A stretch of DNA of 64,000 nucleotides from Lepidodermella squamata (taxonomy: Eukaryota > Animalia > Gastrotricha). Each line of letters starts with the position of its first letter. Position 1 is the stretch's first letter. The notes beneath the pieces were generated by a model, which ran no database searches, had not been told where the DNA came from, and saw only the letters and a list, made by a program, of their open reading frames with translations. The stretch lies in contig JBLDXI010000023.1 in assembly GCA_047495785.1 (NCBI GenBank), forward strand, positions 372,001-436,000, in the 5' to 3' direction. Shown in pieces: positions 7,190-45,992 of the stretch. The translations under genes and the position numbers were made by a program.

Positions 7190-7459
7190 TATATCAATAG
7201 TCTGCTGCTTTAACCTAACAAAACCGTCTCTCTAAATTTGCGTGAAAATAACAATTTCAGCTGCAATGGACTAACTTCGGCCTGTTCTATGTTTTCTCAG
7301 ATTTGGAAAATTCGATAATAAATATCGATAATAAATATAGAGCCCGTTTAGCAAATTTCAGCTTTTTGGGGATTTTGCTTAAAGGGCTCTGTATTTCCAC
7401 TAGAATTTAATTAGACTTTACTTATAGCTGGATTATTATAACTTATTTATCAGAATATT

Positions 7460-8716: not shown

Positions 8717-10609
8717 CAGTGCTCCCTCGTTAGTGGCACCCTCCTTAAAAGAACTCCCTCGTTTGTAGACCGTAATTTTGGACCCTGCTAAATAAATTAG
8801 TTGTAAATTTTTAATTAAACATAAAATAATTATTTGATGGATTAAACAAATTAAGCGTGAAAATTTAAAATAATAAAGCGTTCCTAGAAACCCAGCGGCG
8901 CGTTGTCGTGGTTTTGAGAGATCCAGTTATTTCAAGTTTAGTTCAGACGAGTTGAAAGATCATCAGTGCATTAAGCTGTTCTTGTGGCTTTGAAATGGTT
9001 GTGATTATGCAACAGAGTGTGTGGATTAGCTGCCACTCAGGTCGCGCTGCGAGTCGTCTTGCTTTTTTGTTAAACTTTTCCATCAGAAGTTACGCCAGTT
9101 TATCAGACAAAATCAGCAATTCTTTTCAATAACTATAAAAATTCCCGTCAATCTTCTATCTCCTTGATTCGCAGATTTTTCCTTAGGTCAATTGCTAATC
9201 AACCAATAGACTCATCTGAATTGCCCTGATTTTTCATTTATTAGCTTTTTCCCGGCCAGAAAATCTCTTGAAATTTACCAGCATGTTCAAATTAGGATAT
9301 AAATCGTCTTTTTTTAAGGAAACTGAAACTTGAGTTTTTCCCAATTTTGTTCCCGGCTGTGTTGCGTAATCATGAAGAATCACGTCCTTGTTTCAAGATT
9401 TATTTTAATTTCGATACATGGAATTATTCTCATAAAATTGGACCGATTTTATTCGTTCCAGTTGACCTGAGTTATCGGAATTATAAGTCGATTTTCGATA
9501 GTCGATAGGCCTGATCTAACATGAAACTGGCTGCCACTACTCTACGATTTCATTGCTCAACGCCTTGGCAATTTTACGGGTTTTTTCACAACTTTTAATC
9601 ATTCGATTTTTCTTTGAAAATCGCAACATCCCGAGGAGGGGCGGCGGGAGCTTCTGCCCGATTTTTTACCTTTCTCTGATCTTAATAGGCAATAGGCCAG
9701 TCGAATAAAATTCAGATCACGCCTGATAAGATACAAATTTATTCCATTCAATCAAAACACCTATCGAATCGTTCCCTCTCGACGGAACCACACGTCTTAT
9801 GCCTTGAAATCGGTCCGTGATTGCTCAATGACATTAATTCGATGAATTTGAAAAAGAAAAAGTCAGGTGAACCACGAAATAATTATCGAAATTACATATT
9901 TCATCTTAATTGTTTCAAATTTCATATTATTTTTACACACCTTGGATGCTTGGATTGAATTCTCTCTTGGATGCGCCCTAAGCCCACCCGTGGCCGGCGT
10001 TAATTTATATTACTATTTCGAAATAAAACACCCTGCTGCTTATTTTTAAATAATTCCACGATTTATAGGCGAAGCATGAGTTCTGAATTGAACACTGCAT
10101 TATCTTGAGAATGTTTGGCTGAATTTGCTGTTGATTAATTCAGAAGTATTGTGGTAAATCTTGACCAAGGTGATTGATTTTTTAAGCTGTTATTTCAAAT
10201 GAAATTTGTTTGCGAAATCGGACGAGCTGGGCATTTTTGAAGTAAATTGAACTAATGAGATTCCAGGTTTTTTTACTCTGAGTTAGTTAACCTCAGGCAG
10301 GACTTAAAATCAGAGTAAAAACACAAGACCAGCCAGTCAAATCAAAACCGCCCTGGCAAATAAGAATAAAAACTTGGCGACGAACTTATGATTCATAGTG
10401 TTATTGTTTCACAGCCTTTAGCGAGCGAAATTTGTAATGCCACGTAATCCGTGTCCGTCTCTTTCTGCGCGTTGGCATGGCAACTGTCTTAAGGCGTAGA
10501 AACGGTCTATTTTTAGCTTCTGCATTCAATTACAGCCCTCGTTATAGCTTTCCCTTGTTAAAAGACCGGGTCTGGCTCCCGACCCAGTGCTTTTATCGAG
10601 GGAGCACTG
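8717..10609. mobile_element. Non-autonomous pogo/Tigger-like DNA transposon (~1.9 kb)
   Basis: Perfect 13-bp TIR CAGTGCTCCCTCG at 8717 and 10597-10609, both flanked by TA. No transposase ORF inside. The same terminus recurs at ~54836-54848. Confidence 0.6.
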
Positions 10610-11131
10610 TATCTTGAAGAGGCCAAGGGTAATTTCAAAGCCATCAGCTATCGGTGACTTTAAACAGCGCGTTTCCACCTCGTCGGACAGAAAGTACCCG
10701 ACAACGCCCCGACTCTTGCCACCAAATTTGGCGATACAATTTCCACTGAACTGCGTTGTCGTCATCAGTATTAAGACGTCTGGCTGAAAAGACGAGGCGG
10801 TGGTAGTTGAGTACTTGAAGCGCATGTGGTGGCGGCGCCCAGGTAACAACTTAGCGAAAAGCCAGCATAATAATCGAGGGATGTGAATCTGCTGGTTGAG
10901 ATTTCCGGTATGTAGATCAACTGAAAGATGGAAGGTTCCTGCTCACCACTCAACCTCGACCACCAGGTGCACGACTGAGCGGCCAGTCATACGGTAGGCC
11001 GAGGCCTTGATTAACGATAATTCCACTCGGCTGAACGAACTTGCGGTCGAGCCTGCCCAGCCCGAAGCAACTGAAGGGCTTATCAAGCGCAGCCATCCAA
11101 TCGAGACTGCTACTTATTATTTTACTTCCAT

Positions 11132-11439
11132 TTCAGAATGTTTAACTGCACTACACTCCATGCGTGGTTGATCGAAAGCCAGGCTATTAATAGTCCGAAG
11201 CGTAGTATCGAAATAATGGAACAAGCTGACAGGATGCTTTTACGATCAAGAGTCTTTGGATACGTTGTCGGAACTTGATAATTGTGTTTTGATAGAAAAT
11301 TTGAACGGTGCGACAGTTAGTAGGAGGCGTGGACTTTTAGACAGCTCCCATCGTGTTAACGCCGAAGAAAACTTAATAGAAGGCAGACATTTAGTTGTAT
11401 ACAGACGAGACGTTTTTGGAAATCCAGTTTGCGAAAAGT
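11132..11439. repeat. ~305-bp dispersed repeat, copy 2; overlaps the 96-aa ORF 11256-11546
   Basis: Aligns with 3398-3704. Confidence 0.9.
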
Positions 11440-11970
11440 GCAGACATGTGCATACACGTGCTTGGTTTCTTTCGGCAACTGCTCTGAAAAATCCACATTC
11501 TGGCGGGAAAGCAGTATACATATTTACCAAAGATCCCCCTCCCTAATCCACCCGTTCTTCGAACACCTCTTTTTCCCAGCCTCTTTTAATACCTAATCAA
11601 GAGCCAGAAGTTTTTAAATCAGCTTAATCATGAAGAAGGATTCGCTTTATTCCACATCTTGTTCCAAATCAGTGTGCGAAGTACGGGGGGACCTCAAGAA
11701 ATCACAGGGAAGAAATTCCCAAAAATACCACAGGTTCAAATGAGCTAAAATTGCTCGTGTTGGTCTCTGCAGTGCCGTGTCGTCATGCCGACTGGTCATA
11801 TTCATATTCAGACACCAGGCGTTGAATATTAAGTAAGTGGTTCCTTAGCGTTAAAACATTCGACACGCGACACTCAGTCCAAACACATTATGAAAGCAAA
11901 GAAAATCAATCCTTAATCCAATTAATTCTTATAAAGACAGGTGTTCAAGATAGTTCCTTTGGGGTTGTCT

Positions 11971-14181
11971 CTATTTTTTACGAATTACTGCCGGATAAAA
12001 CCAGGTCGACGACATCATCAGGGAAAAAACAACAACCATCAAGCTGATAGCTGACTGCTGATCGACCGGATTCTCAGCAAGTGTGTAGCCTATCAACACC
12101 CCTGCAGGCAGCACAGACGCGCATATTAGCACAGAGACACAGGATGCCGCGAATTCACGACAATTTTTTGACACACCTGGAATTTGCTTGAGTTTAAATG
12201 CAACCATTAATCCGGCAATGAGAAGCGCCATCTGATAGGTGGCAAAAGCGCTTAATATTGACCAAGCCGATTGGGTACATTTGACAAACCAAGATTCCTC
12301 TTGCTCGTCCAATATTTCATCATATTTCGGCCGGAAGTTGGTCTCTTCACGACAGTCAATGTCTTGAACAGCTGCCCATGCTATCGCAAGTCCAAAACTA
12401 GGGATAGAGAGTATGGCTCCGAATTTTGCTGAGAGCCTGTCGATATTCATGTAATTTTTTGAATTGAGTTTAATCGCTTTTGCATGATCACGACTTGAGA
12501 TGCTAGACATTACAGATCGTACTGTGAGATCAGCTGTTCCTTGGCGACCCAAATCTTTCAAAACAGACCGGATAACAAATATTCGCGATGTAACGCAGCT
12601 GCAGATGATACCTAATCCGAAACCTAGCAGGCAATAAGAGCCAATTTCATTGTTTCTCTCCTTCTCCGCGGCGGAAAACGCGGAAGACGTGGTTAGAATA
12701 ATGCAGCCGATTAGACTAATTACTTTCGAGAATCGATAGCGGTAAACGCGCCTTTTGAGAATTATGGCGAAGATGCCAGAAATCTCGATGAAAAACGCAA
12801 TAGCGATGATAAACGACACAGCTACTTTAAACGCGAGCGACACATGAACGTGAATTAGTCGAAGCAATGGTCGATCTCGGGGAGGTGAGCCTAGAATCCA
12901 CTCAATTTTCGAACCGGTTGATTGAAGCGATACATTTCCACTAAGACCTTGTTGTGAGAAGAAAAGCTGGCGTCTCCCAGATGATTTCGTCCATTGCATA
13001 ACTGCTTGTAGACCGCCTACCAGTTGGCCGTTATCGTCATAAAACGTCTTCCCAACCCTGAGCGTTTTGTACTCCAGTGATAAAACAGCGTTCCTAGCTG
13101 TTCTAGCTATAATTTGAGGTTGATTAGGGTAGTCACGCAAGGATAGGTTGAATTCAGCTTTCAGCCGACACTCAGTTTCATTCAGAGCTAAAAGAACAAT
13201 ACTCAAAGCTGAATGAATGGCGAATGACGAGCTATACTCCTCCGGTAGCATATTTGTAGCTCGCGTCATGTACCGCTCGAATTCGGCGACCGTATCGCCT
13301 AAATCACTGACTGAGTCTATGCTTGTCGATTTGGGCAGAGTTTCGATGTAAAACGACTGTCTGGTTTGCTCCAGCAGGATATCCGAGGGGCAATTTGGCA
13401 GAGTTGTTAATGAAAATGCAGAAGCAACCAAGATGAAAACGAACCGAGGTCCGGTGATTCCAACTTTGTAAGCCTCGCAAAGCAGACGGCTCACTGGGTC
13501 TGGAAGAGTCATCATAATGACAATAATTCTGAGCCCGGATTTTTTCAACGATTCAGCAAATTCGGTTGTCACCTCGTTCATTGCATTGAAAAATGGGATT
13601 TCGATTCCGTTTGAGATTGCTCGGCCATGAAAGGCCAAAGCTGATGCGAAATCGCTCGAATCTGTGGTTGTCGTCACTAGACCCAGTCTACCCCATTTGC
13701 CAACATTTTTCACAAAACTGAGCATTGTAAGCACCGTTGTTTCCGAGGAAGCTTGTGACAGTAACAAGTTTGGGTACGAGGCAGGAATTCTGCAGAACGT
13801 TGAGATTGAAACAAAGTGGATATGGGGCATAGCCGGACCGAGTGATTTACAGCTCGAAGCAATGCCAGGTCCGATAATGATGGGCGACTGGAGATTCTTG
13901 CCATTTCTTACGAATTGGAATAGTTCATTTACCGCTCGCGTTCCCACCATTTCGTCGCGAACATCGTATTCGATTTCATAGTCCGGCAGAATGTCGCCCC
14001 GAGTGTTGATGATTTCAGTTACGTAAGGTCTAACAAGGGTCCCAGCTCTTAAAACTTTAGGGTCGACGTAGGCAATAGGCGTCAAGTAGAGAATTCTAAG
14101 CCGTGTTTTGTTTTGCGCATCGCAGAAGCAAAAGTAGTAGGATGAAGTCGCAAACAGGAAAAAAATCATTTTGATTCTCAT
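11971..14181 (-). CDS. Orphan class C GPCR, GABA-B-like, intronless; copy 3, intact
   Basis: 736-aa ORF with signal peptide (MRIKMIFFLFATSSYYFCFCDA), VFT, PPRDRP linker, 7 TM helices and a very short C-tail. Confidence 0.92.
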   Translation of the reverse strand: MRIKMIFFLFATSSYYFCFCDAQNKTRLRILYLTPIAYVDPKVLRAGTLVRPYVTEIINTRGDILPDYEIEYDVRDEMVGTRAVNELFQFVRNGKNLQSPIIIGPGIASSCKSLGPAMPHIHFVSISTFCRIPASYPNLLLSQASSETTVLTMLSFVKNVGKWGRLGLVTTTTDSSDFASALAFHGRAISNGIEIPFFNAMNEVTTEFAESLKKSGLRIIVIMMTLPDPVSRLLCEAYKVGITGPRFVFILVASAFSLTTLPNCPSDILLEQTRQSFYIETLPKSTSIDSVSDLGDTVAEFERYMTRATNMLPEEYSSSFAIHSALSIVLLALNETECRLKAEFNLSLRDYPNQPQIIARTARNAVLSLEYKTLRVGKTFYDDNGQLVGGLQAVMQWTKSSGRRQLFFSQQGLSGNVSLQSTGSKIEWILGSPPRDRPLLRLIHVHVSLAFKVAVSFIIAIAFFIEISGIFAIILKRRVYRYRFSKVISLIGCIILTTSSAFSAAEKERNNEIGSYCLLGFGLGIICSCVTSRIFVIRSVLKDLGRQGTADLTVRSVMSSISSRDHAKAIKLNSKNYMNIDRLSAKFGAILSIPSFGLAIAWAAVQDIDCREETNFRPKYDEILDEQEESWFVKCTQSAWSILSAFATYQMALLIAGLMVAFKLKQIPGVSKNCREFAASCVSVLICASVLPAGVLIGYTLAENPVDQQSAISLMVVVFSLMMSSTWFYPAVIRKK

Positions 14182-14689
14182 ATCAATTTTAGTAAAGAAT
14201 GAAGTAGTCTATATCGATAATGAATGGAGTGATGAAAAACGATGACAGCGTGTGATTTTGTGTGTGTTCCGCAGTATGAAAGGCAAAGGCGTAATCAACG
14301 GGGAAAGCCACGAAAAGGACGGTGAATACCTTGCACAAATAATTATGTCTGTGCTTCGCTGCTTTCAAGTTGAGTCACTTCCAGCCCGTTTTATAGATGC
14401 GTGTGCCTTTGCATCACATCGAAGTTATGATCGATAAAGTAACCCCGCGTTATTATCTACGCCACATGCACGTTAAGGAAACTAAGTAACGCTAATATGA
14501 AGGAAAACAGCACGACACAAAAGAAGAATCCTCTGCCTACCAGGCCTGATACCTGATCATGTTCACCGAGAGAATGTCGTGAATGAGAACGCAGTAAATT
14601 GGCTAAGAAATTTCTTATCAGACAAACAAGTTCCACACGATTACAGGAAACAAGCGTAGTTCTGCGCGGCGAATTATTTTGACCGCATA

Positions 14690-14995
14690 CCGCTGGGTTG
14701 GCGGTTTACCGCGAGGCAAGCACCAACTCGGGTCGACCGATTTCCAATGATATATGGCATTCGTGAGACTTCCTGCGTCATACTCATATTGGCGAATAAT
14801 GTGACCGAAGTATTTCAAACGATGCTTTTCAATTATTTTACTTAATTCCAAAACGTCACAGATCAATCTAATATCGATGTTAGGTATATAGTCTGTTCTG
14901 AAAAATCCCATAATGGTTCTAAGCCAGCGCATGAAAGTGACATTCAACCTTTGCTCTTGCGTCGTAGTTAGGTTCCAGGTTTCACAGGCGTAGGT
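14690..14995 (-). mobile_element. RTE-clade LINE fragment (post-RT C-terminus)
   Basis: Translates to YACETWNLTTTQEQRLNV..MRWLRTIMG...RLKYFGHIIR...PRGKP, typical RTE ORF motifs. Confidence 0.8.
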
Positions 14996-15239
14996 AATTT
15001 TTTTGTTATTTGATATGCTTAATCTGTGACCGATAATTCAAGCTCAATTACCAGCTGAACTCCAGAGAATTAGTTCAAACTTTGTCTGACGGCTTTTTTG
15101 CTCCGAAAGCCTTCATCCTTTAAGTAAGATTTGAATATCAATACCAATTCAAAGAATCGATAGCATGTCAGCAACAAACATTGAATTTCTCGGGGTTATC
15201 TTTTCTCTATATCGCGAACTTTTTCGAACGCCTATTCTA

Positions 15240-15500
15240 GATTAGACTTCGTGCTTTGTTATAGCTTGATGTTGCTTGACGTGGTCCGTCTCGAGGTCGT
15301 GTTATCGCGCGACTTAATGGTCTTCTTGGGTGCATGGCGGTCGATAGCACTCTTGAAGATGGCTCGGAAGGCGCACCAGAGTTCCTCGCCGCCGCGACAG
15401 CCCCTGTTGTAGAATACTTTCTACCAGTCGATCGATTTGAGATTTGAGTTGTTGGCGACAGCCTTCTTTGTTGAGCTTGGCTCAAATTTCGATCAATCTG
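15240..15500 (-). mobile_element. CR1/L2-type LINE fragment (endonuclease-RT linker)
   Basis: An alternative minus frame reads NLKSIDW*KVF...ELWCAFRAIFKSAIDRHAPKKTIK, matching the IDW...ID.HAP linker of CR1/L2 ORF2; contains stops. Confidence 0.65.
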
Positions 15501-15752
15501 AAATACCTTCAATCTGAAGCTTTAGATTAAGATTATTTTTAATAGCGTCCTAATTCTGCGTAAGCTTTTTTTACTTTTTCGACTGGACGTTCTGCATAAA
15601 AGCCCACTGCAACCGTAAAACAAATAAGAAAAACAAAATTTGTGTATCTGCTCTATATTATTATTGAATGTGAAGCTGAATTCAACAGAACAGCAACACT
15701 AAACGACTAATTTTCCCAATGCCGACAAAAGAATCAGTTGTTGAGCCTTGGT

Positions 15753-17990
15753 TCATTTAGTCGACCTGTTGGTGTGAATTACTGCCGGATAAAGCAAGGT
15801 AGCCGACAACATCAGAGAAAAAACAACAGTTATCAAGCTGATAGCGGACTGAAGATCAACCGGATTTTCAGAAAGAGTGTAGTTAATGAGGAACCCGGCT
15901 GCCTGCACAGAGGCGCATATTAGCACAGAAACACTTGATGCCACGAATTCACGACAATTTTTAGCAACACCTGGAATTTGCTTCAGTTTGAATGCAACCA
16001 TCAACGCAGCAATGAGAACCATCATTTGATAAACCGTAAAAGCGCCCAATATTGACCAAGCCGATTGGGTACATTTCACAAACCAAGTTTCTTCGATTTC
16101 GTCCAATATTTCATCGTATTTAGGCCGGAAGTCGGTCTCTTCACGGCAATCGACATCTTGAACAACTGCCCAAGCTACGACAAGTCCAAAACTAGGAATA
16201 GAAAGTATGGTTCCAAATTTCGCCGTGAGCCTGTCGATTTTCCTATAGAATTTCGAATCCAGTATGATCGCGATTTTATGAACAGGACATGGCATGATGG
16301 CTATTCTTGACCGGACTCTAGGGATAGCTGCCACTAGGCTATGGCGCCTATAATTATTCAATACAGATCGCAAAACGATAATTCGTGACGTAACACAGCT
16401 GTAGATGAGACCTAGTCCGAAACATAACAGGCTATACGAGGTGATTTCCTTGTTTTTCTCCTTCTCCGCAGCAAAAATCGCTGAAGACGTGGTTAGAATG
16501 ATACATCCGATTAGGCTAATAAATTTCGACAATCGATAGCGGTGAAGGCGCTTTTTGAAAACTATGGTGACGATACCAGCAATTGCGATGGAATACGCGA
16601 TAGCGATGATAAACGAGACTGCAACTTTGAAAGCTACTTTAAACGCGAGCGAAACACGAACATGAATTAGTCGAAGCAAAGGTCGATCTCGGGGAGGTGT
16701 GCCGAGAATCCACTCAATTTTCGAAGCAGTTAGCTTCAGTGTTACGTTACCGCTCAGACTTTCCTGGGCAAGAAAAATATTTCGTCTGCCTGCCGATTTC
16801 GTCCATTGCATAACTGTTTGGAGACCGCCTACGAGCTGACCGTTCTTGTCGTATGATGTCTTCCCTACCCTGAGCGTCTTGTATTCGAGTGATAAAACAG
16901 CGTTTCTCGCGGTTCTAGCAACAATGTCAGGCTGCTTAGGGTAGTCGCGCAAAGATAGGTTGAATTCAGATTTCAGCCGCCGATCAGTTTCATTCAAAGC
17001 TAATAGAACATTGCTAAAAGCCGAGTGAATGACAAAAGACGACAAATAGTCCTCAGGTAGCATGTTCGTAGCTCGCGTCATGTACCGCTCGAATTCTGCG
17101 ACTGTATCACCTAAATCACTGACTGAGTCGTTGTTAGTTGTCTTTGGGAGAATTTCGATGTAAAACGATTGCCTGGTTTGGTCTTGTAAAACAGCCAATG
17201 GACAATCAGGGGTAGGAGTCAAAGAAAATGCCGATGCAAACATTATAAATACGAACCGAGGGCCGGTAATACCAGCTTTGTGAGCCTCGCAAAGTAATCG
17301 ACTTACTGAGTGAGGAAGAGTTATACTAATGACAACAACTCTGAGCCCGGACTGTTTCAACGAATCGACAAAATCAGGCGTGACCTCGTTCATTGAATTG
17401 AAAAATGGAACCTCGATCCCGTTTGAGATTGCTCTGTCATGAAAGGACAAAGCTGTAGAAAAGTCGTTAGAATCACTGGTTGTAACAAGAGCCAACCTCG
17501 TCCATTTGCCAACATTTGTCACAAAGCTGAACATGGTTTGTACCGAGGTTTCCGAGGACGACTGTGACAGAAAAAAGTTCGAGTACGAGGCAGAAATTCT
17601 GCAGAAGGTAGAGATAGAAACCAAGTTGAGATGGTGCAGAGCCGGACCGATTGATTTACAACTCGGCGCAATACCAGGTCCTATGATTATAGGTGCCCGA
17701 AGGCCTTGCTCATCTCTTAGGAATTCGAATAGTCCGTTCACTGCTCGCATTCCCAGCATTTCATCGTGAAATTCGTATTCAATTTCGTAGTCCCGCAGGA
17801 TGTCGCCCCGAGAGTTGATGATGTTAGTAACGTACGGTCCAACAATGGCCCCAGCTCGTACAAGTTTCGTGTCAATGTAGGCTACGGGGTTCATGTAGAG
17901 AATTCGAAGCCGTGTTTTGTCGTGCACTTCGTAAGAGCGCAAGCCGTTGAATTCCACGATAACTACGATAATCAGTGCTGGGCTTGGCAT
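15753..17990 (-). CDS. Orphan class C GPCR, GABA-B-like, intronless; copy 4, intact
   Basis: Inside the 782-aa ORF; the first ATG at 17990 (MPSPALIIVV) aligns with paralog starts. Same VFT+7TM layout, with a 4-aa duplication AFKVAFKV in TM1. Confidence 0.88.
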   Translation of the reverse strand: MPSPALIIVVIVEFNGLRSYEVHDKTRLRILYMNPVAYIDTKLVRAGAIVGPYVTNIINSRGDILRDYEIEYEFHDEMLGMRAVNGLFEFLRDEQGLRAPIIIGPGIAPSCKSIGPALHHLNLVSISTFCRISASYSNFFLSQSSSETSVQTMFSFVTNVGKWTRLALVTTSDSNDFSTALSFHDRAISNGIEVPFFNSMNEVTPDFVDSLKQSGLRVVVISITLPHSVSRLLCEAHKAGITGPRFVFIMFASAFSLTPTPDCPLAVLQDQTRQSFYIEILPKTTNNDSVSDLGDTVAEFERYMTRATNMLPEDYLSSFVIHSAFSNVLLALNETDRRLKSEFNLSLRDYPKQPDIVARTARNAVLSLEYKTLRVGKTSYDKNGQLVGGLQTVMQWTKSAGRRNIFLAQESLSGNVTLKLTASKIEWILGTPPRDRPLLRLIHVRVSLAFKVAFKVAVSFIIAIAYSIAIAGIVTIVFKKRLHRYRLSKFISLIGCIILTTSSAIFAAEKEKNKEITSYSLLCFGLGLIYSCVTSRIIVLRSVLNNYRRHSLVAAIPRVRSRIAIMPCPVHKIAIILDSKFYRKIDRLTAKFGTILSIPSFGLVVAWAVVQDVDCREETDFRPKYDEILDEIEETWFVKCTQSAWSILGAFTVYQMMVLIAALMVAFKLKQIPGVAKNCREFVASSVSVLICASVQAAGFLINYTLSENPVDLQSAISLITVVFSLMLSATLLYPAVIHTNRSTK

Positions 17991-19404
17991 TTCACTGTTA
18001 GATAACAATACCGTTGAAGAGAACTGGTAGTATGGTAGCAAACTTTGATTCGTTATCGTGGTCAAGAAAATTGCAAAAACTAACACGCAACAAACAAACA
18101 AGAGTTAACTTAACGAAATAGAATGCGATCAAAGCGAGCCGATTTTTCGGCGATATGCCTCTCAAAATGCGAAAGAACGAGCATCTCGAAGCTGGTTTTT
18201 TCGGAATAGGTCTGATTTTAGGTCATTTTAGGTACCAAATGCGAGTTATAATGGAAGTTACCTGTCTTCAACAAAAATTGAAAAGGTAGGATGTCTCTAA
18301 ACGTCGATTTGGGACCCCCAGTCAATCTGAATACATCTCGACTTGAAATTTTTACCAGGAGCAACTGACACCATGAACTCTCGACTGGCAACAAAAAGTT
18401 GACCTTTGTCTACGGGAATTCGGTACATGTGACCTTAAAGTTTAGCCCTAACGTGGGGTAATTTTGGACATAATAAATGCGTTGAGCTCAAAGCAGCGGG
18501 AAAACAATTTGAATCGAGTTTGGATGACGTAATCAGTTTCTTGGCACCACGTGCGCATTTTTTTCGGAATTTAAATGAAAGCTTCAAGTTCTGCGATCAT
18601 CTTGACGATTATGAATATGCTAATGAGGTGTCCAAATTTAGCCTAACCACGCACCGCTTTTTTATAAAATCAAGGTAACATGGAAAAATTACCAAATTTT
18701 GCACAGATATGTGAAGTCTGCCCTGAAGTCCCCCTCATGCCCTGAAATTTTCACGTGTGCATTTTTTTTCCTGATTTTCTAGAGCTGAAAATCATGTTTT
18801 TGTCCAAAATAACTAAACTTACGGTAGCGAGTCAAACACATAAAAATGTATATGGACGGCTTCTTTTATAAAATCGGTCCATCTGAAACGGATTATTTCT
18901 GTGTGTTGGACACGCCGTCTTAAACTAGATCGAAGACGGATTTTTATTTCAGATACATGTATTAAATATCGATGAAACCTGCTATATATTTAAAATTCGT
19001 AAGCTTGTGTTGCCTTGTCTAGTCGTTATTCAGAGTTGGCGCCTCGAGGCTCACGTAATATTATTTTTCGCATTCTGGCTGATGAGAAGCCTGAGCGTTG
19101 GAATAACTAAGGTCCCGCGCAGTATTCACCACGCGTTTCTCAATCTAATTAGCGCTAGACAGACAGCTAACGTCTGAGATGAGCCGTGTTTATCGACCAT
19201 CAAGACAGTCGGGTTTCCTTGCCACTAACATATCGGGTTTCTGAAGAACGTTGATCACGCAGGCTGGACTTGGCGGAGAATGAGTTCAAACTGTGCTGCT
19301 CCTGAAGCCTTCTTCGTTTCAAACGCAAAATGTTAAAACCAATTCATAACTTTTATTTTTTCAAAGGCGATAGCGAAGATGATGATGATTAAAACTGTTG
19401 CGTT

Positions 19405-33548: not shown

Positions 33549-35751
33549 ATGAGAAGCTTAATGCCAATTTTCGTGGCTGCCATGATAATGTGCTGCTTTT
33601 GCGATACGCAGAACAAGACGCGACTAAGAATTCTCTACTTGACCCCTATAGCCTACGTCGATCCTAAAATTGTGCATGCCGGTGCCATCGTTAGACCATA
33701 CGTAACCGAAATCATAAACTCTCGAGGCGATATTTTGCAGGACTATCAAATCCAATTGGAAGTTCGCGACGAAATGGTGGGAATGCGAGCAGTGAATGAG
33801 CTGTTTGCTTTCCAAAGAGATGAGCAGGGTCTGCAGTCGCCTATCATTATCGGACCTGGTATTGCGTCGAGCTGTAAATCAATCGGCCCAGCACTGCACC
33901 ACCTCAACTTGGTTTCCGTCTCAACGTTCTGCAAAATTTCTGCCTCATATCGGAACATGTTTCTATCACAGGCGACATCCGAAGCTACAGAGAGGACAAT
34001 GCTCAGTTTCGTGAAAAATGTTGGCAACTGGACGAGGTTGGCTCTAATTACGAGCAGTGATTCAAACGACTTTACATCGGCTTTATCTTTTCATGACAGT
34101 GCAATCTTAAACGGGATCGAAGTCCCATTTTTCAATTTAATGAATGATGTGACTCAGGATTTCATTGACTCGTTGAAACAGTCCGGGCTTAGAATTATCG
34201 TCATCAGTATAGCACTCCCTGACCTGGTCAGTCGTTTACTTTGCGAGGCTTACAAAGCTGGGCTCACAGGCCCTCGATTCGTTTTCATGCTGGTTGCTTC
34301 AGCGTTTTCATTAACGCCCACTCCATCATGTCCTTTAGCTGTATTGCTAGAGCAAACCAGGCAGTCTTTTTACATCGAAAATTTGCCGAAGGCGGGTAGC
34401 AACGACTCAGTCAGTGATTTGGGCGATACAGTTGCAGAATTCGAGCGGTACATGACGCAGGCTACAAAAATGTTACCGGAAGAGTATCTCACATCTTTCG
34501 TCATTCATTCCACTTTGAGTAATGTCTTGTTAGCGCTGAATGAAACTGACCGTCGGCTGAAAGCTGAGTTTAACCTATCTCTGCGCGACTACCCTAATCA
34601 GCCTGAAATTGTAGCTAGGACAGCGAGAAATGCCGTATTATCACTCGAGTACAACACGCTCAGGGTTGGAAAGACGTCATACGACAAAAACGGCCAGCTC
34701 CTAGGTGGTATTCAAACAGTTATGCAATGGACGAAATCAAGAGGCAGACGAAATGTTTTTCTTGCCCAACAAGGTCTTAGTGGCAATGTATCGCTGAAAC
34801 CCACCGGCTGGAAAATTGACTGGATTAACGGCTCACCTCCCCGAGATCGACCATTGCTCCGTAAATTGAACGCTCGAGTTTCGCTCGCTTTCAAAGTTGT
34901 CGTGTCGTTATTTATCGCCTCAGCGTTATCCATCGAAATTTCTGGCATCGTTGTTATCACGCTGAAGAAATTCATTCGCTATCGATTGTCGAAAATAATT
35001 AGCCTATTCGGATGTATTATTCTTACCACGTCCTCCTCTCTGTTCGCCGCGGAGAAGGAGAGAAACAGGGATCGCCTCGTATTACCTGTTAGGTTTCGGT
35101 CTAAGTATCGTCTGCAGCTGCTTTACGTCACGATTTCTTGTCTTACGATCTGTTTTGAAAAATTTAGGCAAGGGGATAGTTTATCTCAGAGCACAGTCGG
35201 TGATGTCCAGCATATCAAGCCGTGATCAGATAAACGCGATTCAACTCGATTCTAAAATGTACATGAAAATCGACAGGCTCACAGCGAAATCCGGAGCAAT
35301 ACTCGCTATTCCTAGTTTTGGACTAGTGATAGCATGGGCGACTGTTCAAAACGTTGATTGCCGCGAAGAGACGATTTCCCGGAGATACGACGAAGTATTG
35401 GACGAAAAAGAAGAAACTTGGTTTGTTAAATGTACCCAATCGACTTGGCCAATATTGGCCGCTTTTACCGCCTATCAGATGTCGCTTCTCATCGCCGGAA
35501 TAATGGTTGCATTTAAACTCAAGCAAATATCTGGTGTTGCTAAAAATTGTCGCGAATTTATGACATCTGTCGTTTCGGTGCTAATAAGCGCGTCTATGCT
35601 GCCTGTAGGGGTCCTCATTGGTTATACGTTAGCTGCGAATCCGGTTGATCAGCAGTCAGCTATCAGCCTGTTGGTTGTGATGTTTTCCTTGGCGTTGTCG
35701 GCGATCTGTCTTCATCCAGCCGTCACTCGTAAAAAATTAGGAATTATTTAG
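33549..35751 (+). pseudogene. Class C GPCR copy 5, frameshifted, opposite orientation to copies 1-4
   Basis: ORFs 33549-35225 and 35155-35751 are two parts of one paralog. A 2-nt deletion near 35070 (AAC AGG G ATC GCC TCG TAT versus N-K-E-I-T-S-Y in copy 4) shifts the frame; it could be a sequencing error. Confidence 0.85.
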
Positions 35752-37974: not shown

Positions 37975-39594
37975 ATGAAGATTCTCCCAGTTTTCTTCAC
38001 TCTCTACGTCACGTTGTTCGTAAGCCTGACTCTTCAACGTAAGTTCATACCTTTTAAATCTATGCACAAGTAGCTGAATTTTCTTGTAGAATGCTCTCCG
38101 CCGTGCGAGGAAAGAGGAGGACTTTGCAGCTCAGCCAACACATGTCAATGTCTAGCTAGATTTAGTGGAGATAATTGTTCCCAGGGTAGGTCTCATTCAA
38201 TAATCATCTGCAAAGTCTCCTATTTTATGTTTTACCTCGACTTGAAGTGATCGCGCCAATAGTGGCTCCGGCAAGCTACATCTCCAAGTACTCCTACGTT
38301 GGCGATGGATATTTTAGTAAGAAATTGTATCCCTTCAACCGAGAGAGAACTATCGATATAATTGTTACAGATGCGAACTGGCGTTACACCTGCAACAAAA
38401 ATTTTACAGTTCTCGGGTCCGCAAATGACATTTATCTCGTTTCGACTGGTCAATCGACATTTGCTTCATTCATTAATAAAAACGTGAATTGTCATAATTT
38501 TTGAACAATTAAGGCTCATTCCCCTGCTATGCCAGTATTTTGATCTGACTGATTTCTCGATCAATGTGACAATGCAGCTCGACGCGCCTGTCGGCAGAAA
38601 CACTGACTTTTACACAATCAGCGTTCTGTCGAATTCAACGATGACATACGCTACACCGCCAACAGTATCCAACATGTTCAACAGTTCGAACTACGCCGGA
38701 TTCCTGTTTCGAGTTGCGGGTTACATGGCGTCGTATCAAGTTATCTCATCGCCAACAGCGACCACGGTTGATATGTCCAACTTCGTTACGATGCCGAAAG
38801 CTTCGTTGAGTCTTAATAACATCAGAGGCCGCCACCACGTCGGCATTGTTGTTAGGGGTAGCAAAATATGGGTGGACATGTGTACGAATTCTTCTTGCAC
38901 AGCGGTGTTCAACGCTCAATCATTGCCTGGTGTCTTATTTCCGATTGCGGACGCTACCATGGAACGGCCTGTCATCGCTGTGACTGCGGTTAATAACGGC
39001 TGCTATGATCCTGTCAGACTCTACGATTTGCGGGTCTATAATCTAGGTAAATTTCTCGTCTGGATTATGAGGAGGCTCGATAAATTGAGGAGGCTTGGAA
39101 TTTCTTCAACATTTTGAGCTCTAATTTTAGGTTAAAAACTCATGTTTCAATTTTTTTTTTCGTACCAGCTACGATAAACTGCAATCCTGGTTGTGCGAAG
39201 GGAATTTGCATTGGTATCAATATCTGTTCATGCAATAGAGGTTGGACTGGCCCGCTCTGTGATAGACGTAAGTATTAATTAATTAATTAATTGACACAAA
39301 TTGCTCCATCTAAATATGCCTCGAATTTATCACTAGAAACTTGTGGCTCTACAATTTGTTCGCGCGACGCTTATTGCAAATCGGCGGGCAAATGTGAATG
39401 CTTCAACAAGTGGAGAACTGGCCCCGATTGTTCTCAAGGTAGGAGACAGCCAGCTTTCATCTAGATTTGGGTAATGTTGTCACTGGATAGGTCTTTGTGA
39501 TTGTAATAACTCGAAGCGATGTTTTGCGATGCTTTGCGACTGCGATGATGGATTGCAGCGTCGCGACTGCAACGATAAATTGGCAGTGTATTGA
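37975..39594 (+). CDS. Secreted protein: signal peptide + EGF + LamG/ConA-like beta-sandwich + 3 EGF-like repeats; 7 exons, 403 aa
   Basis: Exons 37975-38038, 38090-38185, 38248-38483, 38536-39046, 39169-39267, 39337-39438 and 39491-39594 (GT-AG, 1212 nt, open). Signal MKILPVFFTLYVTLFVSLTLQ; EGFs CSPPCEERGGLCSSANTCQCLARFSGDNC and CNPGCAKGICIGINICSCNRGWTGPLC; HHVGIVVRGSKIWVD...LYDLRVYN resembles LamG. Confidence 0.82.
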
Positions 39595-40127
39595 CATTCC
39601 CTTTTATATCAGCTTCCAGCTTCCTGATCATCGCTGAGGATGCTGAGACTCCTTATCTAAAATTTGAGTTTTCTATTTCGTTCTTCATAACTGATGAAAA
39701 TCCTATCCATTGTGATTTAACTCTGGCGAGACTCCCGTCACAACGATTCTTGATTAACACTTAACCCTCAATAGGAAAGACAGGAAAGACTTGATAATGA
39801 AATTAGCATCAGTCTCTAAAGATGAATTAACATCTTTTGTGGTATAATACGCAGCGAAAATTTCGTAACGTGTAAATAAATTTGAATGCGATTTTTTTGT
39901 GACGACACATCAAGTTTTTAAATGAGTGCAGACGTGCGCCCGCCATATTTCAGCAAGCCGAGTCATTGATGGTGAATGAAAAATTTAGCAACAAATCGCA
40001 CTGAGAATACTTGCTCCATTGACGTGATCGCCTGAGCTATGACATGAAAGGCTTTGGAGACAAAAAATAAATTAGATTTTCGTCTTACAAAATAGCGAGG
40101 AAATAATATCAGGCTGTATATCTAGCC

Positions 40128-43100
40128 ATGACAAGTGGAGGTGTGAACAGCAACAAGTTGGGCCCACGGCTTTCAGTCGAGCCTTTCAACACGCGTCAAA
40201 GGACATACGACGCCATGATACCCGCTACAGTTGACCACTTTCTAGTTGAAAAAATAGCCGAGATAAAATCGACCGAGAGCAACAACCAGCCAATGTTCAC
40301 GTTCCAGGTCAACAACGCGCCTGTGGATTCGCGGAAAAATCAATCGAAAATCAAACACTCGCCTGAGTTGATCGATCGGATTTTGAAATCGATTCAGCTC
40401 ATATGTCGCGACGACGAGGCGGAGCGGAAAGCTGGGTTATTGGTGATAACCGGCGATGAAGGCGTTGGCAAAACGTCGTTGCTAGCGAAATTGGTGAATG
40501 ATACGGCGAATCATACGTTCTTCTTCTACGATTGTAAACTTCAAGCGACCGAGTGGTTCAATTGCTATCAATGGCGGAACTACCAGAGCTTGACGTCTGG
40601 TGACACTAAACTGTCGTTGAAAGGTTGGTAAATCTACTTAAATTGCTAAACTTTGAATTCTAATTCCCAAACATTTTACCTGGAAAAAGAATTTCCGGAG
40701 AAATGATGCGGAAAAATCTCAAAAGTTCACATGAATTGCAATAAACCTTGTTTCGCCTCATTGTGGAAATTTTGGCTTTTTAAACTTCGAAACATCTAAA
40801 TTTCGCTCCTCTGAATTTCAAGGTGAAATATCGGCTCCGGGTAAGTGATTATAGGCTATCGAATCTCTATGAATTGTAGTATTTAGCCATCCCTGTTTCC
40901 TTACAACCTTTAATGAATCTCATATGTCTCAGCCTTATCAAATAGTCACTGAACAGCAGCTTGCAGCACTTCGATAGATGTAGCTCTTTAAAGCTTGAAA
41001 CCGAATTTTAACAAGCTAATTCGAACAATGCACACTTTTTCAGAACAAGAAGATGGTTTCAAGGCAGCTTTGGCAAACTTGACGAAATCTGGAGTGAAAA
41101 CTGAACATCACGAACGCGTCTCCACGTTATACATTTTCGACGATGTTTACCACTTGTCTCTTATCGAATTGATCAAACGGAAAATCGTGGACGACCTGCT
41201 CATGCCCTGCGTTGTGCTGGTCAGGTCCCAAGACGCCAGAGCTATGCAACTGATCCCTAAATGGAACCGCCTGATCACGAAAATGGAAGAGCTGCCCCGT
41301 TTCACGAATATCCAACTTGCGCAAATGTTGTTGGCTAGCAAGAAATTTTCGTTCGAACGGCAAGATACTTCGCTGCTGCGAGAGCTTGTCAACGAATGCG
41401 ACGGCTTGCCAAGGCCTCCGTCGGCTTTGATCGCGAAACGATCTTCTCGACCGCCGAAGCAGGCGGTTGATTTGTCTCAACGTCAGAATCGAACACCGTC
41501 AGTTGATACAGCAATTCTGAGTGGGAACTTTCTGAATCGGCAGGATGGTGATATGAACGCGTTTTCTCCCCGCCTTCATGGGTTGGGGTCGATTTTTGTC
41601 ACGCAGGCGATTGGGCTGAATGCGGTGAATCGCGGCTATACGGACATTGCGGCGACTGCCTCTTCTTCGACCCGAGCTACACGTCAGGGAACAACGCCGC
41701 AGTTGGAACTGAGGTAACATTTAAAAAAATTCCCACATATGGTTTACCGGATGTTATTCAGGCTGCTCAATGTTCCGGAGTATCAGTTCCAAGGAGCTGC
41801 TTACTACCCACGCCAAGCCGAGGAAGAACGCGTACTTCAAGCTATTCGCCGAGCTTGCTCCATCTTAAGCCCCTCAGATCCAGGCGAGGATCATTCGTTG
41901 GGACACGCCGTAACCGCCGTCTCAATCAACGGCCCCAGTGGAGTCGGCAAGTCAACCCTAGTTTCCCACATTCTCAACGACCATAGATATCAAGCTAACG
42001 TGCTGCAAAAGTACTGCAAGCTTGATACAGTCATATGGTTAAACTGTGGTCCCGATGATTCATTAGCCGCTATTCTAGAGGCCTTTGAAGAGCTTATGAA
42101 ACAATTAGCCGAAACGATTCGTGGCCAATCAGCCGAGTCACTTTCTTCAAAATCAAATTTTCGAACGTCGAAGAAGCAACGGCTGCTCTTCACAATTGAC
42201 GATTTCCCTCATACAAATATAGACCAAGATCAATTGGTCAGCAATTTGAAGCCGCTAGCCGAGAAAAACAGCTGTGTCTGCGCGGTTATTCTGATAAATT
42301 CAGCTTTGGAGAAGGCTCGTCCACCTGCGATTTCATCTTCGGGCTACGCCATCTCGATCGATCGAATGTCGGACTGGCAGCTTGTTGATATGTTCGAGAC
42401 GGTTTACTCGCTGAAGGACAAACTTCACGCCACGCATCACCTTCTCAACTTGGCTAATCAAAAAATCTGCGGTGGCTTGCCTATCATCGCTAGTTTGATA
42501 TCTAGCATACTGAAGCACCACAGTTGCGACCTGAAAATTTACAAAAATATCGCGAAATTGGGCGTAGCGACCGCGGGTGCCTCGAAACAAGCTAAAATTA
42601 GCTCTATCATTACGAAATTATTTGAAATGGCAATGTCATGCCTTGCAGATCGGGATTCATCGCTTGAGAACACGTTCAATACCTTCATTATGTTCGAGGC
42701 CGGTGAATCGATAAGCGTCGAAGTCGACCTTGCCTTTTTATGGCAGAAATCAGTGGAGGAGGCTGATGTTATTTGCCATATTTTCGAGTCTTTGGGCCTT
42801 TTGACGAGATACGAAATCAATAATGGGGAACACCAGCCGAGGCATGTCTTCGTCCAAGTTCATCCGCTGATTTTCCCGGCAGTTTACGAACGGCATATTC
42901 AGCTAGCGACGACGTTTGCCTCGATTTCAATGTCACGAGCTCGGCTGAATATTCTGTTGAATCTATTGCACGATCGAGGGTTGACATTCACACAATACAT
43001 CGACCTGGGTTTGAAGTCGAATCAGCGAAATCTGATTGATAAGATTTTGCAGCTGCTATCGCCGAGGGATATTCACGACATCGTGATTGCATCGAAAATT

Positions 43101-44902
43101 CCACCTGCCTTGCAGCCGCAAAGTGATTTCAACTCGCTCGATATAGCGACTGATGTTCAGGGCTGGACTGGGATCATGCTGACGGCGAAATACGGCCATC
43201 TTGAGCTGTTGAGGCAGCAAATCATGGCTTTCAATGACAATCTAGCAGTTCTGAGAAAACGTAAGTTAGCTTGACTTATCTCTCGCTTAGAAGGAAGAGC
43301 AATAGAAACGAAGGCTCAACTAATCCTAGGTGCATAGTCCAAAATCATAGTCCAAATTCCCACATTTTCGGTTCCGCGCTTCTATCCCCTCCGCCCCCAC
43401 CTGTAACCTCCCTAACCAGTATCCCTTTTTATTCCTAACCTCCCTTCCTTTCACCCCTTCCTTCACTATGATTCCGGCTTTTTCTGATTTCCTACTTTTT
43501 ACTTACTCTTTCATTCTTCTTTCGTTGGATCTCTAACTTAAAGTTTTGAGCTTTATCCTCACCATTTGAGTTTCGCTTGATTTATCTACATTTTAATATA
43601 TTTTTATTGTATTTGACAGTTGTTGCTAATCAAGAGAACGAACACGGAATGTCTGCCTTGATGATGGCAGTCAAAAACAATCAGTTCGACACAGCTCGAT
43701 TTCTTCTCTCTTTTGACTACGACCCAGAAGACGACTTGAAGCCAACAGCCAGCTCATTACTAAGAGCACAAAACGTATTAGGCGAAACTCCTCTCATGGT
43801 CGCAATAAACCAAATCGGCAACAAACTGGTGTCGAATCAAAGCCTTGAAATGATTAGATTGCTGATAAACAAGAGTTCCGACCCTGAAATTCTGAAGCAG
43901 GTCGATGGTAACGGAGACAGTGTTCTTGCATTGACAGCTGCCTACAACAACATGACCGCCCTGAAAATCATAACATCAAGTCCTGGATTCACCGACGATT
44001 CGCATCTCGTGATGACGATTCAAAACCTTGTCGGAGAAACTGCGTTGATGAAGGCGCTTCAAGTTAAGGACAAACCAGTTAGCATGGACCTCATTCGATG
44101 GATGTGTGAGACCTGCTCGGACGTGCTTCGTTACGCCGATTACCAACATCGTTACCCTCTTCACGTCGCGAACAACATCCAAGCTGTGAGCTACCTCTAC
44201 GAAAAATGGCCCGAGGCTATGACAATGAAGGATAAGAAGGGCCGGACCCCTCTTATGTCCGCGATTTTGAATCACGAGAACTACGACAAAACTTGGTTTG
44301 AGATCATCCGATTCTTCATTAGCCACTCGACGTTGGGGGATTTGATGCTGTGTTCGGCTAATTCAGGTCGAACTGCGTTAATGTTCGCCGTGGATATGCG
44401 GCAATTAAACACGGTCCAGTTTATGCTTCAAACAGCCTCGAAATTACCGAATGGGGTTAATTCTTTACTGAAGCAGAAAGATTCAGATGCGAAATCAGTT
44501 GTCGAACGAGCGATCGAGAACTACTGCCTGGAAGAATGTTCGCATTCCTGTCAAATTAATCACCAGAATCAAATCGCGATTTTGAAAGAATTGTTTGAAG
44601 CGTTCGTTACGAATGGGGACAAGGAGAGTGGCGAGGCTTTGAAGGTAAAATTGGGGGAAATTGTTCATGCCAAGTTGGAAGAGTTTGGCGGGAAACATGA
44701 ACGTGATTCCGGCCATCATTCGAAGCTGAACCACAGTCACATGGCATTTTTGGAACAACTGGCTAAACTGTTCGTCTCCACGCCGAATTTGGCAGCTACC
44801 ACAGAGACGCAAACTGTTGTCGAGCCGGAGAATCTAGAGACGCATCCTGCTTTTGAGCAACAGCCGTCGATACCAGTTGAACCGCCAAAGCCGGAACATT
44901 GA
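40128..44902 (+). CDS. NLR-like STAND NTPase: two tandem NB-ARC domains + winged helix + ankyrin repeats; ~1291 aa
   Basis: Proposed exons 40128-40533, 40823-40840, 41044-41713, 41762-43260 and 43620-44902 (3876 nt, open). NB-ARC1: ITGDEGVGKTSL, LYIFDDV, CDGLP. NB-ARC2: INGPSGVGKSTL, LFTIDDF, CGGLPII, LAFLW, VQVHPLI. ANK: GWTGIMLTA, GMSALMMAV, GETPLMVAI, GRTPLMSAI, GRTALMFAV. The exon 1-2 junction is the least certain part. Confidence 0.85.
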
Positions 44903-45089
44903 AACTGGCCGTTTTATTGATTACCCGAGTGAATTTCTTAGATTTCGAAAGTAAAAGGCGATAGACACTGAAGACTGAAGACAAATGTTGATCATGCAAA
45001 AATAGATGAATTTTTTTAATGCTAAATTTTATTCAAATTTGAATATCAAGCTTCTTCACTGCTTTCATGGAGTCAGATGGCTTTGCACT

Positions 45090-45501
45090 CAGTGCTTTGG
45101 ATTTGATTTGATTTATACCATATTTTCACTGATTTAGATTTGAAATGATTGATTTATGGGGAAAGCGTTTTAATTTGATTGATTTTGATTTGATTGAGGG
45201 TTCAATCGAAAAACGTGATATCGGGAAGCTAGGATCTTTCCCCTATTTTGAGGGAAACTCGCTTCAGAAAGGTACAGTAGTTTCATATTAGCGTTATTTT
45301 ATCCATTTCTTGACATTTCGAAGCACCAAACTTCATGAAAATCTAGATGTTTCGCGATTTATTGTGATTTATAGGTGCCAATGATTTGATTTGATTTGAT
45401 TGATTTTGTCCTGGAAAATTGGGAAAATGATTGATTTTGATTGATTGAAGAAGGTCTGTGATTTAAGCTGTAAATCTAATCAAATCAAATCCAAAGCTCT
45501 G
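45090..45501. mobile_element. hAT-like MITE with (GATTT)n subterminal repeats
   Basis: TIR CAG(T/A)GCTTTGGATTTGATTTGATT; imperfect 8-bp flanks TTTGCACT and TTTTTACT. Confidence 0.75.
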
Positions 45502-45817: not shown

Positions 45818-45992
45818 AAGCACGCATTGCCGTGCGTTGCAGGTAATTTGATTTTTCATCTCAAGGAATTTTTTCTGTAATATTTCATGGCACGCTACGC
45901 TATTGTATAAATTTTAGTACAGAAACAAATTCCTTAAGATAAAAAACCCTATTACCTGTAGAAGGGCTAACAACGCACGGCAATGCGTGCTT
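45818..45992. repeat. Inverted-repeat element ~100 bp upstream of ankyrin copy B
   Basis: Perfect 22-bp inverted repeat AAGCACGCATTGCCGTGCGTTG / CAACGCACGGCAATGCGTGCTT. Confidence 0.75.

Follow-up and report, generated by a model that had tools for sequence, protein, structure and literature searches.

Does one animal protein carry two Apaf-1-type nucleotide-binding modules in series and, if so, what could the first of them do in a family without an effector domain? Among bilaterian animals, a switch of the Apaf-1 type is usually a single-copy adaptor in apoptosis. The question is raised by a locus in a 64-kb window (the whole 64,000-nt stretch of DNA analysed here) that encodes, in order, a shortened extra Apaf-1-type P-loop module, a complete module and an ankyrin-repeat tail.

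Locus organization and protein family

The gene locus is intact and comprises four + strand exons (40128-40623, 41044-41713, 41762-43260 and 43620-44902). The three introns between them (420, 48 and 359 nt, the second putative) are all GT-AG and all frame-keeping. The parts of the locus are as follows:

40128-40623, + strand: exon 1, with the start ATG, about 60 aa without predicted structure, the module 1 Walker A and the beta-2 motif
40624-41043, + strand: intron 1 (420 nt, GTTGGT...TTTTTCAG, phase 1, GT-AG)
41044-41411, + strand: module 1 part of exon 2, with Walker B, the VVLVRS strand and CDGLP
41412-41713, + strand: linker part of exon 2, ~100 aa, rich in R, S, A, T and P
41714-41761, + strand: putative 48-nt intron (GTAACA...TTATTCAG)
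41762-43160, + strand: complete NB-ARC (module 2) in exon 3, from the head motif to the winged helix, then a helical domain
43161-44521, + strand: ankyrin array, from the end of exon 3 across intron 3 into exon 4 (from 43620)
43261-43619, + strand: intron 3 (359 nt, GTAAGT...TTTGACAG, phase 1, GT-AG)
44522-44902, + strand: C-terminal tail of ~125 aa without a family match, with a TGA stop at its end

Domain content, the order of the parts and the intact frames are established, as is the coding signature: in-frame codon-usage scores were positive in all four exons, linker included, and negative in every frame of introns 1 and 3. The start ATG of exon 1 (40128) has a TAG acceptor 2 nt before it. 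The initial annotation had claimed two full motif sets, and all of the motifs that it quoted are present where it placed them, in a single frame on the + strand. We lean towards reading the locus as a single gene of four exons that encodes a protein of ~1,316 residues, ordered as N-terminus, module 1, linker, module 2, ankyrin repeats and tail, with module 2 as the switch, and belonging to a rare animal-lineage NB-ARC-ankyrin family. All searches were run exon by exon, with module 1 as two separate exon queries; tblastn with the exons as queries found no further NB-ARC copy in the 64-kb window. The + strand ORFs upstream of the locus are EGF-like and part of another gene.

The family relations are equally firm. 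Four relatives were found among 1.84 billion representative proteins, each on a metagenome contig, and at least one of these contigs is animal. Each has a single NB-ARC, a head of 7-24 residues and no effector domain, with a Pfam preference for NB-ARC (1e-11 to 7e-12), and a tandem module is absent from all four. A word-index protein search with exon 3 gave no match, and two scans of metagenome contigs (with family alignment A1 and with exon 3) returned pattern matches and zero confirmed relatives. The family is rare and of animal lineage, and couples the switch to ankyrin repeats without a death-fold head. The build seen here, in which an extra half-switch, a complete switch and an ankyrin tail occur at one locus, is real and rare. 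The locus is a member of a very sparsely sampled animal family, and raises the question of how headless receptors signal.

A complete and a truncated NB-ARC module

Module 2 is a complete Apaf-1-type NB-ARC, with nucleotide-binding domain (NBD), helical domain and winged helix. Its motifs are all in exon 3:

41763-41777, + strand: LLNVP head motif
41931-41954, + strand: Walker A, GPSGVGKS
42033-42047, + strand: IWLNC
42183-42206, + strand: Walker B, LLFTIDDF
42468-42482, + strand: CGGLP
~42684-42875, + strand: winged helix, followed by the helical domain
42858-42866, + strand: VHP at the MHD position, within the winged helix

In the family alignment, the columns of GPSGVGKS and LLFTIDDF are invariant or conserved, and CGGLPIIA provides the ARC1 GLPL motif. 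Against Pfam, exon 3 matched NACHT (35.4 bits, 1.2e-8, cut-off 26.7) and NB-ARC (33.1 bits, 4.5e-8, cut-off 23.5), and Atlas features pointed to NB-ARC clusters (0.97). When exon 3 alone was compared with the PDB by phmmer, only DARPins were recovered, via the terminal ankyrin repeat; reaching Apaf-1 needed the family profile, which aligned with Apaf-1 (1z6t) from the NBD to the winged helix (Apaf-1 145-464, E 1.5e-13) and with CED-4 (E 2.7e-4). Foldseek with the exon 3 model, which is of low confidence (pLDDT 53.9), ranked Apaf-1 (1e-10), CED-4, Dark and plant NLRs top. In the same low-confidence model, a beta hairpin at 347-366 directly precedes VHP (366-368).

The profile alignment places the family's vH(P/E) on the LHD of Apaf-1, which bears out the earlier description of VHP as MHD-like. 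That description had been accompanied by a remark that substitutions of the MHD Asp often make plant NLRs autoactive, which finds no support here: the Asp is Pro in module 2, but across the family the His of this position is conserved and the next residue is P, E or R, so VHP is the family norm rather than an autoactivating lesion.

Module 1 is split between exons 1 and 2, and carries these motifs:

40308-40322, + strand, exon 1: VNNAP
40452-40475, + strand, exon 1: Walker A, GDEGVGKT
40551-40565, + strand, exon 1: beta-2 motif, EWFNC
41127-41147, + strand, exon 2: Walker B, LYIFDDV
41211-41228, + strand, exon 2: VVLVRS strand
41397-41411, + strand, exon 2: GLP motif, CDGLP

As judged by sequence, module 1 is a true paralogue that corresponds to the nucleotide-binding domain of the family and the beginning of ARC1. 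Both Walker motifs are present (A, GDEGVGKT; B, LYIFDDV). Exon 1 resembles exon 3 by BLASTP (E 1e-6) and aligns with columns 21-91 of the family profile (hhalign E 1e-12); for exon 2, the BLASTP comparison with exon 3 was not significant (E 0.33) and the match to columns 131-225 was weak (hhalign E 4.4e-4), covering profile positions 128-217 from Walker B to GLP. With a profile built from the outside relatives only, exon 1 scored 49.4 bits and exon 2 a weak 4.5 bits, where 500 shuffles reached at most 2.2; exons 1 and 2 matched in collinear order. A hidden exon inside intron 1 was ruled out, exons 1 and 2 together spanning family profile positions 22-217 without a gap. General libraries recognised little of this module: exon 1 reached 13.4 bits against Pfam NB-ARC (cut-off 23.5), its top Pfam matches, AAA_22 (1.5e-5) and nSTAND3 (4.8e-5), were both below their own cut-offs, exon 2 searched singly had no Pfam match, and NCBIfam gave only generic P-loop noise on exons 1-3. 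The AF2 model of exon 1 (pLDDT 46.2) was too poor for a fold search.

Homology in module 1 ends with the GLP helix, at CDGLP plus a few residues, and no winged helix, MHD or complete ARC1 was found in it. Beyond profile position ~220, module 2 was the sole match in all + frames of 38000-45300, and neither the linker nor the introns held a winged-helix remnant in any + frame. The ~100-aa linker matched no family profile positions, and its hydrophobic fraction is 0.23, vs 0.39 in the domain part. The view in the initial annotation that there are two STAND P-loop modules of NB-ARC type, the first truncated and the second complete, with a winged helix in the second only, agrees with these profile results.

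The truncation in ARC1 could also mean that exons 1 and 2 are the decaying remains of a tandem copy, part of which was deleted; they would be untranslated or functionless, and only the unit from 41739 would matter. The failure of Pfam to recognise exon 2 and the weakly positive in-frame score of the linker (only +0.07 bits per codon) would fit such decay. We nevertheless find this explanation hardly credible, since Walker A and Walker B are intact, ~389 codons stay open across a frame-keeping GT-AG intron and the in-frame codon usage of exons 1 and 2 (+0.18 to +0.20) equals that of exons 3 and 4. Moreover, module 1 has only ~30% identity to every relative, and a divergence as old as this would imply many stops in a relic.

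The junction between the modules

Whether the modules belong to one protein depends on the junction at 41714-41761. The initial annotation had described a 48-nt in-frame interval between the modules, and a GT..AG interval of that length is indeed present, its splicing being putative. The length is a multiple of 3 and the interval contains an in-frame TAA (41715-41717); it starts one base before the position expected from the TAA, with its GT donor overlapping the stop codon (G|GTAA). The acceptor, TTATTCAG, is at the first AG after the donor, in frame, and is similar to the acceptors of introns 1 and 3. Other ORF-joining introns in the window measure 47-55 nt, placing the 48-nt interval in the same size class. 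We infer that both modules probably lie on one transcript, and the 48-nt intron is presumably spliced, which would yield a single protein.

A serious though less probable reading is that of two adjacent genes, transcribed separately or as an operon: an upstream NBD-only gene of ~389 aa ending at the TAA at 41715, and a downstream single-module NB-ARC-ankyrin gene starting from the ATG at 41739, with the GT..AG coincidental. This ATG (41739-41741) lies inside the 48-nt interval, 21 nt after the stop codon and 10 codons before the NVP motif, in the same place as the starts of all four relatives (P0001, P0002, P0004 and the L003 gene), which are all single-module. In addition, modules 1 and 2 (D1 and D2) are at least as distant from one another as from outside relatives, as expected for old neighbouring paralogous genes. 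However, 21 nt is too short for a 3′ end and a promoter together. Between the stop (41715) and the ATG (41739) the sequence contains no AG, and neither AATAAA nor ATTAAA occurs in 41600-41800; the junction is therefore without an operon-type acceptor or a polyadenylation hexamer. Furthermore, the upstream ORF remains open for ~100 codons past the GLP homology, through the linker and right up to the 41713/41714 donor (chance ~0.005 in random sequence of this composition), and by a rough estimate an in-frame 48-nt GT...TTATTCAG ending at the first AG would arise by chance in 1 in 50 to 1 in 200 cases. If there were two genes, the finding would shrink to a tandem pair of the ordinary kind, one gene of which is truncated.

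The overlap of stop and donor allows a further reading, in which both forms are made: the spliced transcript would give the two-module protein, while retention of the 48-nt intron would give a free NBD-only protein via the TAA, so that the intron would act as a switch between tethered and free module 1. Retention would truncate the protein exactly at the exon end, and the donor, GTAACA, is weaker than that of intron 3 (GTAAGT). Yet any GTAA or GTGA intron after a phase-2 exon end behaves alike, so the feature is not specific, and we regard this arrangement as very unlikely.

Ankyrin sensor, N-terminal head and possible mechanism

On the single-transcript reading, which we prefer, the protein would carry module 1 behind an N-terminus of ~60 aa and end with the ankyrin array and tail. 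There are ~8-9 ankyrin repeats, several with long inserts; the first (43161-43187) shares exon 3 with the NB-ARC, and the array runs on into exon 4, where the match to Pfam Ank_2 (3.7e-26) upholds the earlier assignment of ankyrin repeats after module 2. A C-terminal repeat sensor is joined to the NOD, which is an NLR-type feature. At the other end, residues 1-95 of exon 1 had no significant Pfam match, and the exon 1 model contains no secondary structure before residue 56 (pLDDT 30-37, low confidence). We discarded the idea of a death-fold or TIR head: Pfam gave no signal, the ~60 free residues are not enough to accommodate either domain, and the relatives are also headless. The absence of a recognisable death-fold effector noted initially thus holds for Pfam and the exon 1 model; no trace of an N-terminal effector domain (CARD, PYD, DD, TIR or CC) was found, and the low-confidence model leaves room for a small novel fold.

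It had been proposed that the first NB-ARC replaces the effector domain. Because each of the four relatives has one NB-ARC, a short head and no effector at all, absence of an effector is the family ground state, and there is therefore nothing for module 1 to replace. What module 1 may do instead can be framed by what is established for other STAND ATPases, among them Apaf-1, CED-4 and plant NLRs. Module 2 would act as an ADP/ATP switch, held shut by the ankyrin array until ligand binding, and nucleotide exchange in it would lead to oligomerisation. Module 1, being without a winged helix, would be unable to lock itself and would serve as an accessory P-loop module carried by the linker. Most likely, we conjecture, it would do one of two things: cap the module 2 oligomerisation face in cis (autoinhibition), or cluster on activation and so recruit single-module family members. 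That a winged-helix-less ATPase copy now does the work at the N-terminus in an effector-less animal NB-ARC family, either as a tethered pseudo-protomer that blocks the oligomerisation face of the switch until ligand binding or as a bait that nucleates free single-module members into a mixed ring, seems to us rather unlikely. If true, it would be an NBD-as-effector or NBD-as-inhibitor design independent of plant tandem-NBD receptors. An immune role for the locus is purely conjectural. Should the tandem be confirmed on one protein, it would parallel, in an animal, the tandem-NBD receptors of plants, for example WTN1, the mechanism of which is only now under study, and would be a natural test case for an isolated NBD with intact Walker A and B beside a full switch.

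The locus shares with Apaf-1, CED-4 and Dark (animal AP-ATPases, the NB-ARC clade of STAND) the order of NBD, helical domain and winged helix in module 2 and the His at the MHD (LHD) position, but differs from them in having no CARD, ankyrin repeats instead of WD40 propellers and an extra truncated NBD upstream at the locus. Sequence identity to Apaf-1 is only ~13-16%, and any link to caspases would be conjectural. Among early-branching animals, Trichoplax sp. H2 has an expanded repertoire of 39 NB-ARC genes (PMC6321704). The likeness to our family lies in a lineage-specific expansion of Apaf-1-like NB-ARC genes whose repeat sensors are not LRRs. The placozoan genes are reported to differ in the type of their C-terminal repeats and in often having a death-like head, and tandem modules and ankyrin sensors are not among the features reported for them (PMC6321704). 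Tandem NB-ARCs occur in plants, in wheat WTN1 (CC-NBD I-NBD II-LRR; bioRxiv 10.1101/2024.08.30.610185) and the rice NLR Pib (PMC4917536), which resemble the locus in having two NB-ARC-type modules in series before a repeat sensor, although their presence on one polypeptide is putative here. In the plant proteins the N-terminal coiled-coil effector is retained and the sensor consists of LRRs, whereas the locus is effector-less with an ankyrin sensor, a module 1 without a winged helix and a ~100-aa low-hydrophobicity linker between the modules. Its origin, in an animal-lineage family, is independent of theirs.

Gene model and the junction between the modules

Given GT-AG introns, four plus-strand open stretches align into one frame-consistent model of about 1,316 codons. 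Exons 1 and 2 carry a truncated P-loop/NB-ARC unit (module 1), and exon 3 carries a complete one (module 2). The features are as follows:

40128-40623, plus strand, exon 1
40624-41043, plus strand, intron 1 (420 nt, GTTGGT..TTTTTCAG)
41044-41713, plus strand, exon 2
41714-41761, plus strand, putative intron 2 (48 nt, GTAACA..TTATTCAG)
41762-43260, plus strand, exon 3
43261-43619, plus strand, intron 3 (359 nt, GTAAGT..TTTGACAG)
43620-44902, plus strand, exon 4

Every motif quoted in the initial annotation is found in the sequence. A codon-usage score trained on the other long ORFs of the window is above zero in frame for all four exons, N-terminus and linker included, and below zero in every frame for introns 1 and 3. 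That exons 1 and 2 are a dead relic is very improbable, since their codon usage and intact motifs speak against it. All searches and folds were run per exon, and module 1 was tested as exon 1 and exon 2 separately. The ATG at 40128 follows the sequence tatatcTAG/cc (window 40100-40130), whose unpaired TAG acceptor lies 2 nt before the start codon. Opposite exon 2 and the linker lie antisense ORFs of 117, 81, and 73 aa (window 41127-41720, minus strand), probably a by-product of sense-strand codon composition.

We consider it fairly likely that 41714-41761 is spliced as an intron, placing modules 1 and 2 on one transcript and in one protein. The interval starts with a GT made with the stop codon and ends at the first AG past the donor, which is in frame; its acceptor (TTATTCAG) is similar to those of introns 1 and 3, and its 48 nt fall within the size range (47-55 nt) of other introns that join ORFs in the window. 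Past the end of homology, about 100 further codons of the upstream ORF are free of stops, right up to the donor at 41714. There is no AG between the stop and the ATG at 41739, and no AATAAA or ATTAAA within 41600-41800. On the other side, this ATG stands 10 codons ahead of NVP, the same spot as the starts of the four metagenome relatives of the exon 3 protein, all of which are single-module. These points favor separate upstream and downstream genes, an arrangement that we regard as rather unlikely.

Two NB-ARC modules of unequal extent

Module 2 has all the parts of an Apaf-1-type NB-ARC. Exon 3 lies above the Pfam gathering scores for both NACHT and NB-ARC, and its language-model features fall among NB-ARC clusters (0.97). 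A profile built from five sequences (exon 3 and the four relatives) matches Apaf-1 (1z6t, residues 145-464; E 1.5e-13) across the NBD, helical domain, and winged helix, aligning the conserved family v-H-(P/E) on the LHD of Apaf-1; the next matches are CED-4 (2.7e-4) and a plant resistance protein (2.4e-3). The AlphaFold model, for which the alignment was shallow, is of poor overall quality, with a pLDDT of 53.9 that rises to 70-86 across the winged-helix region. In this low-confidence model the order of strands and helices is correct, and Foldseek places Apaf-1, CED-4, Dark, and plant NLRs at the top (1e-10 to 1e-6). The VHP at 42858-42866 comes after the winged-helix hairpin, the same placement as the MHD motif. 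Because the His is kept in four of the five family members and the residue after it is variable, VHP is the norm for the family, not a lesion.

Sequence comparison identifies module 1 as a truncated paralogue of this NB-ARC unit. Around the P-loop, exon 1 aligns with exon 3 (1e-6 by BLASTP), and it matches columns 21-91 of the family profile at E 1e-12. Exon 2 matches columns 131-225 (E 4.4e-4), a span that opens at Walker B and closes with the GLP motif; at the level of sequence profiles, these matches support STAND identity for the first P-loop region. To avoid circularity, a second profile was made from the four outside relatives only, against which exon 1 scored 49.4 bits (positions 22-88) and exon 2 scored 4.5 bits (positions 128-217), the maximum among 500 shuffles being 2.2. 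The exon 1 and exon 2 matches are collinear, with no gap requiring a further exon. VNNAP is a counterpart of the family N-terminal (I/V)xNVP motif, and module 1 retains intact Walker A (GDEGVGKT) and Walker B (IFDD) motifs. Homology stops a few residues past CDGLP; in none of the plus-strand frames across 38000-45300 was there any trace of what module 1 lacks, namely the remainder of ARC1, the winged helix, and the MHD. The initial annotation was thus right that the first NB-ARC is truncated and that only the second has a winged helix. A linker of about 100 residues follows, rich in R/S/A/T/P and poor in hydrophobic residues. In the P-loop block, module 1 shares 20/66 identities with module 2, and 24/67 and 22/64 with metagenome relatives. 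Since the modules are no closer to each other than to these relatives, either the duplication is an old one or the modules come from different paralogues that became joined.

Head, ankyrin array, and relatives

The roughly 60 residues before VNNAP have no Pfam match and were modeled without secondary structure (low confidence, pLDDT 30-37). A death fold or TIR head would need more residues than this, in keeping with the earlier observation that no death-fold effector is recognizable. After the second NB-ARC, ankyrin repeats follow as described, the array beginning within exon 3 (43161) and comprising about 8-9 repeats, of which several contain long inserts, before a tail of about 125 residues.

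An exhaustive search of 1.84 billion representatives returned only four relatives of exon 3 (E 1e-11 to 2e-4, identity 28-33%), all from ENA metagenome contigs and all with Pfam matches to NB-ARC and/or ankyrin; no protein of the same species was found in the databases searched. Their heads have 7-24 residues before NVP, and on two of the contigs (L003 and L004) the upstream flank is occupied by other genes, with no P-loop module among them. The effectorless state is therefore the ground state of the family, which undercuts the proposal that the truncated NB-ARC replaces an effector. L003 is an animal contig, as its Cys-loop receptor and Sushi-domain genes show. In its relative, P0003, the NVP-motif head occupies a small exon of its own (ORF 9758-9988) before an exon starting at the P-loop (L003:9758-10001), so P0003 as called was cut N-terminally by a prokaryote-style gene call. 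In P0002 (L004:1821-3851), the ARC1 C.G.P helix segment is repeated (residues ~205-245 and ~305-345), so partial internal NB-ARC duplication is a recurrent feature of this small family.

Among plants, known receptors with tandem NB-ARC domains include wheat WTN1, with a CC-NBD I-NBD II-LRR layout (bioRxiv 10.1101/2024.08.30.610185), and rice Pib (PMC4917536). Early-branching animals are known to have enlarged NB-ARC repertoires in which the repeats are of non-LRR types (PMC6321704). Particular to the present locus are a family without a head domain and an extra module in front of the full one, with intact catalytic motifs yet without a winged helix.

Possible mechanism and surroundings

By analogy with the established behavior of Apaf-1, CED-4, and plant NLRs, module 2 would be an ADP/ATP switch in which the winged-helix His touches the bound nucleotide. 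Sensing of a ligand or partner by the ankyrin array would release the switch, and nucleotide exchange could then lead to ring or filament assembly. Module 1 can probably bind nucleotide but lacks a winged helix to lock it. Most plausibly, on its flexible tether, it would either fill the NBD-NBD interface of module 2 in cis, causing autoinhibition, or, clustered upon activation, recruit free family members. An immune role for the gene is conjecture.

The window has a G+C content of ~42-46%, with which the 43% of the published Lepidodermella squamata assembly (PMC11660948) is compatible. Animal genes in the window encode ankyrin proteins, EGF-like pieces, and class C GPCR-like receptors. Genes of the last type number at least four (ANF_receptor and 7tm_3), at 760-18101 (minus strand) and 33549-35751 (plus strand), and are interrupted by very short introns, 47-55 nt long (e.g., 6204-6158 and 35222-35276). 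Directly upstream of the gene, at 38566-39464 (plus strand), are ORF pieces, two of them EGF-like and Cys-rich (EGF_Teneurin, 1e-4), which probably belong to another gene, one for a secreted protein; an ORF of 183 aa in this stretch (38566-39117) matches no Pfam family. The downstream spacer (45040-45470) contains many short repeats of the gatttgatttgattga type, and a hairpin-like pair of arms, …gcacgcattgccgtgcgttg… and …caacgcacggcaatgcgtgc…, is present at ~45820-45990.
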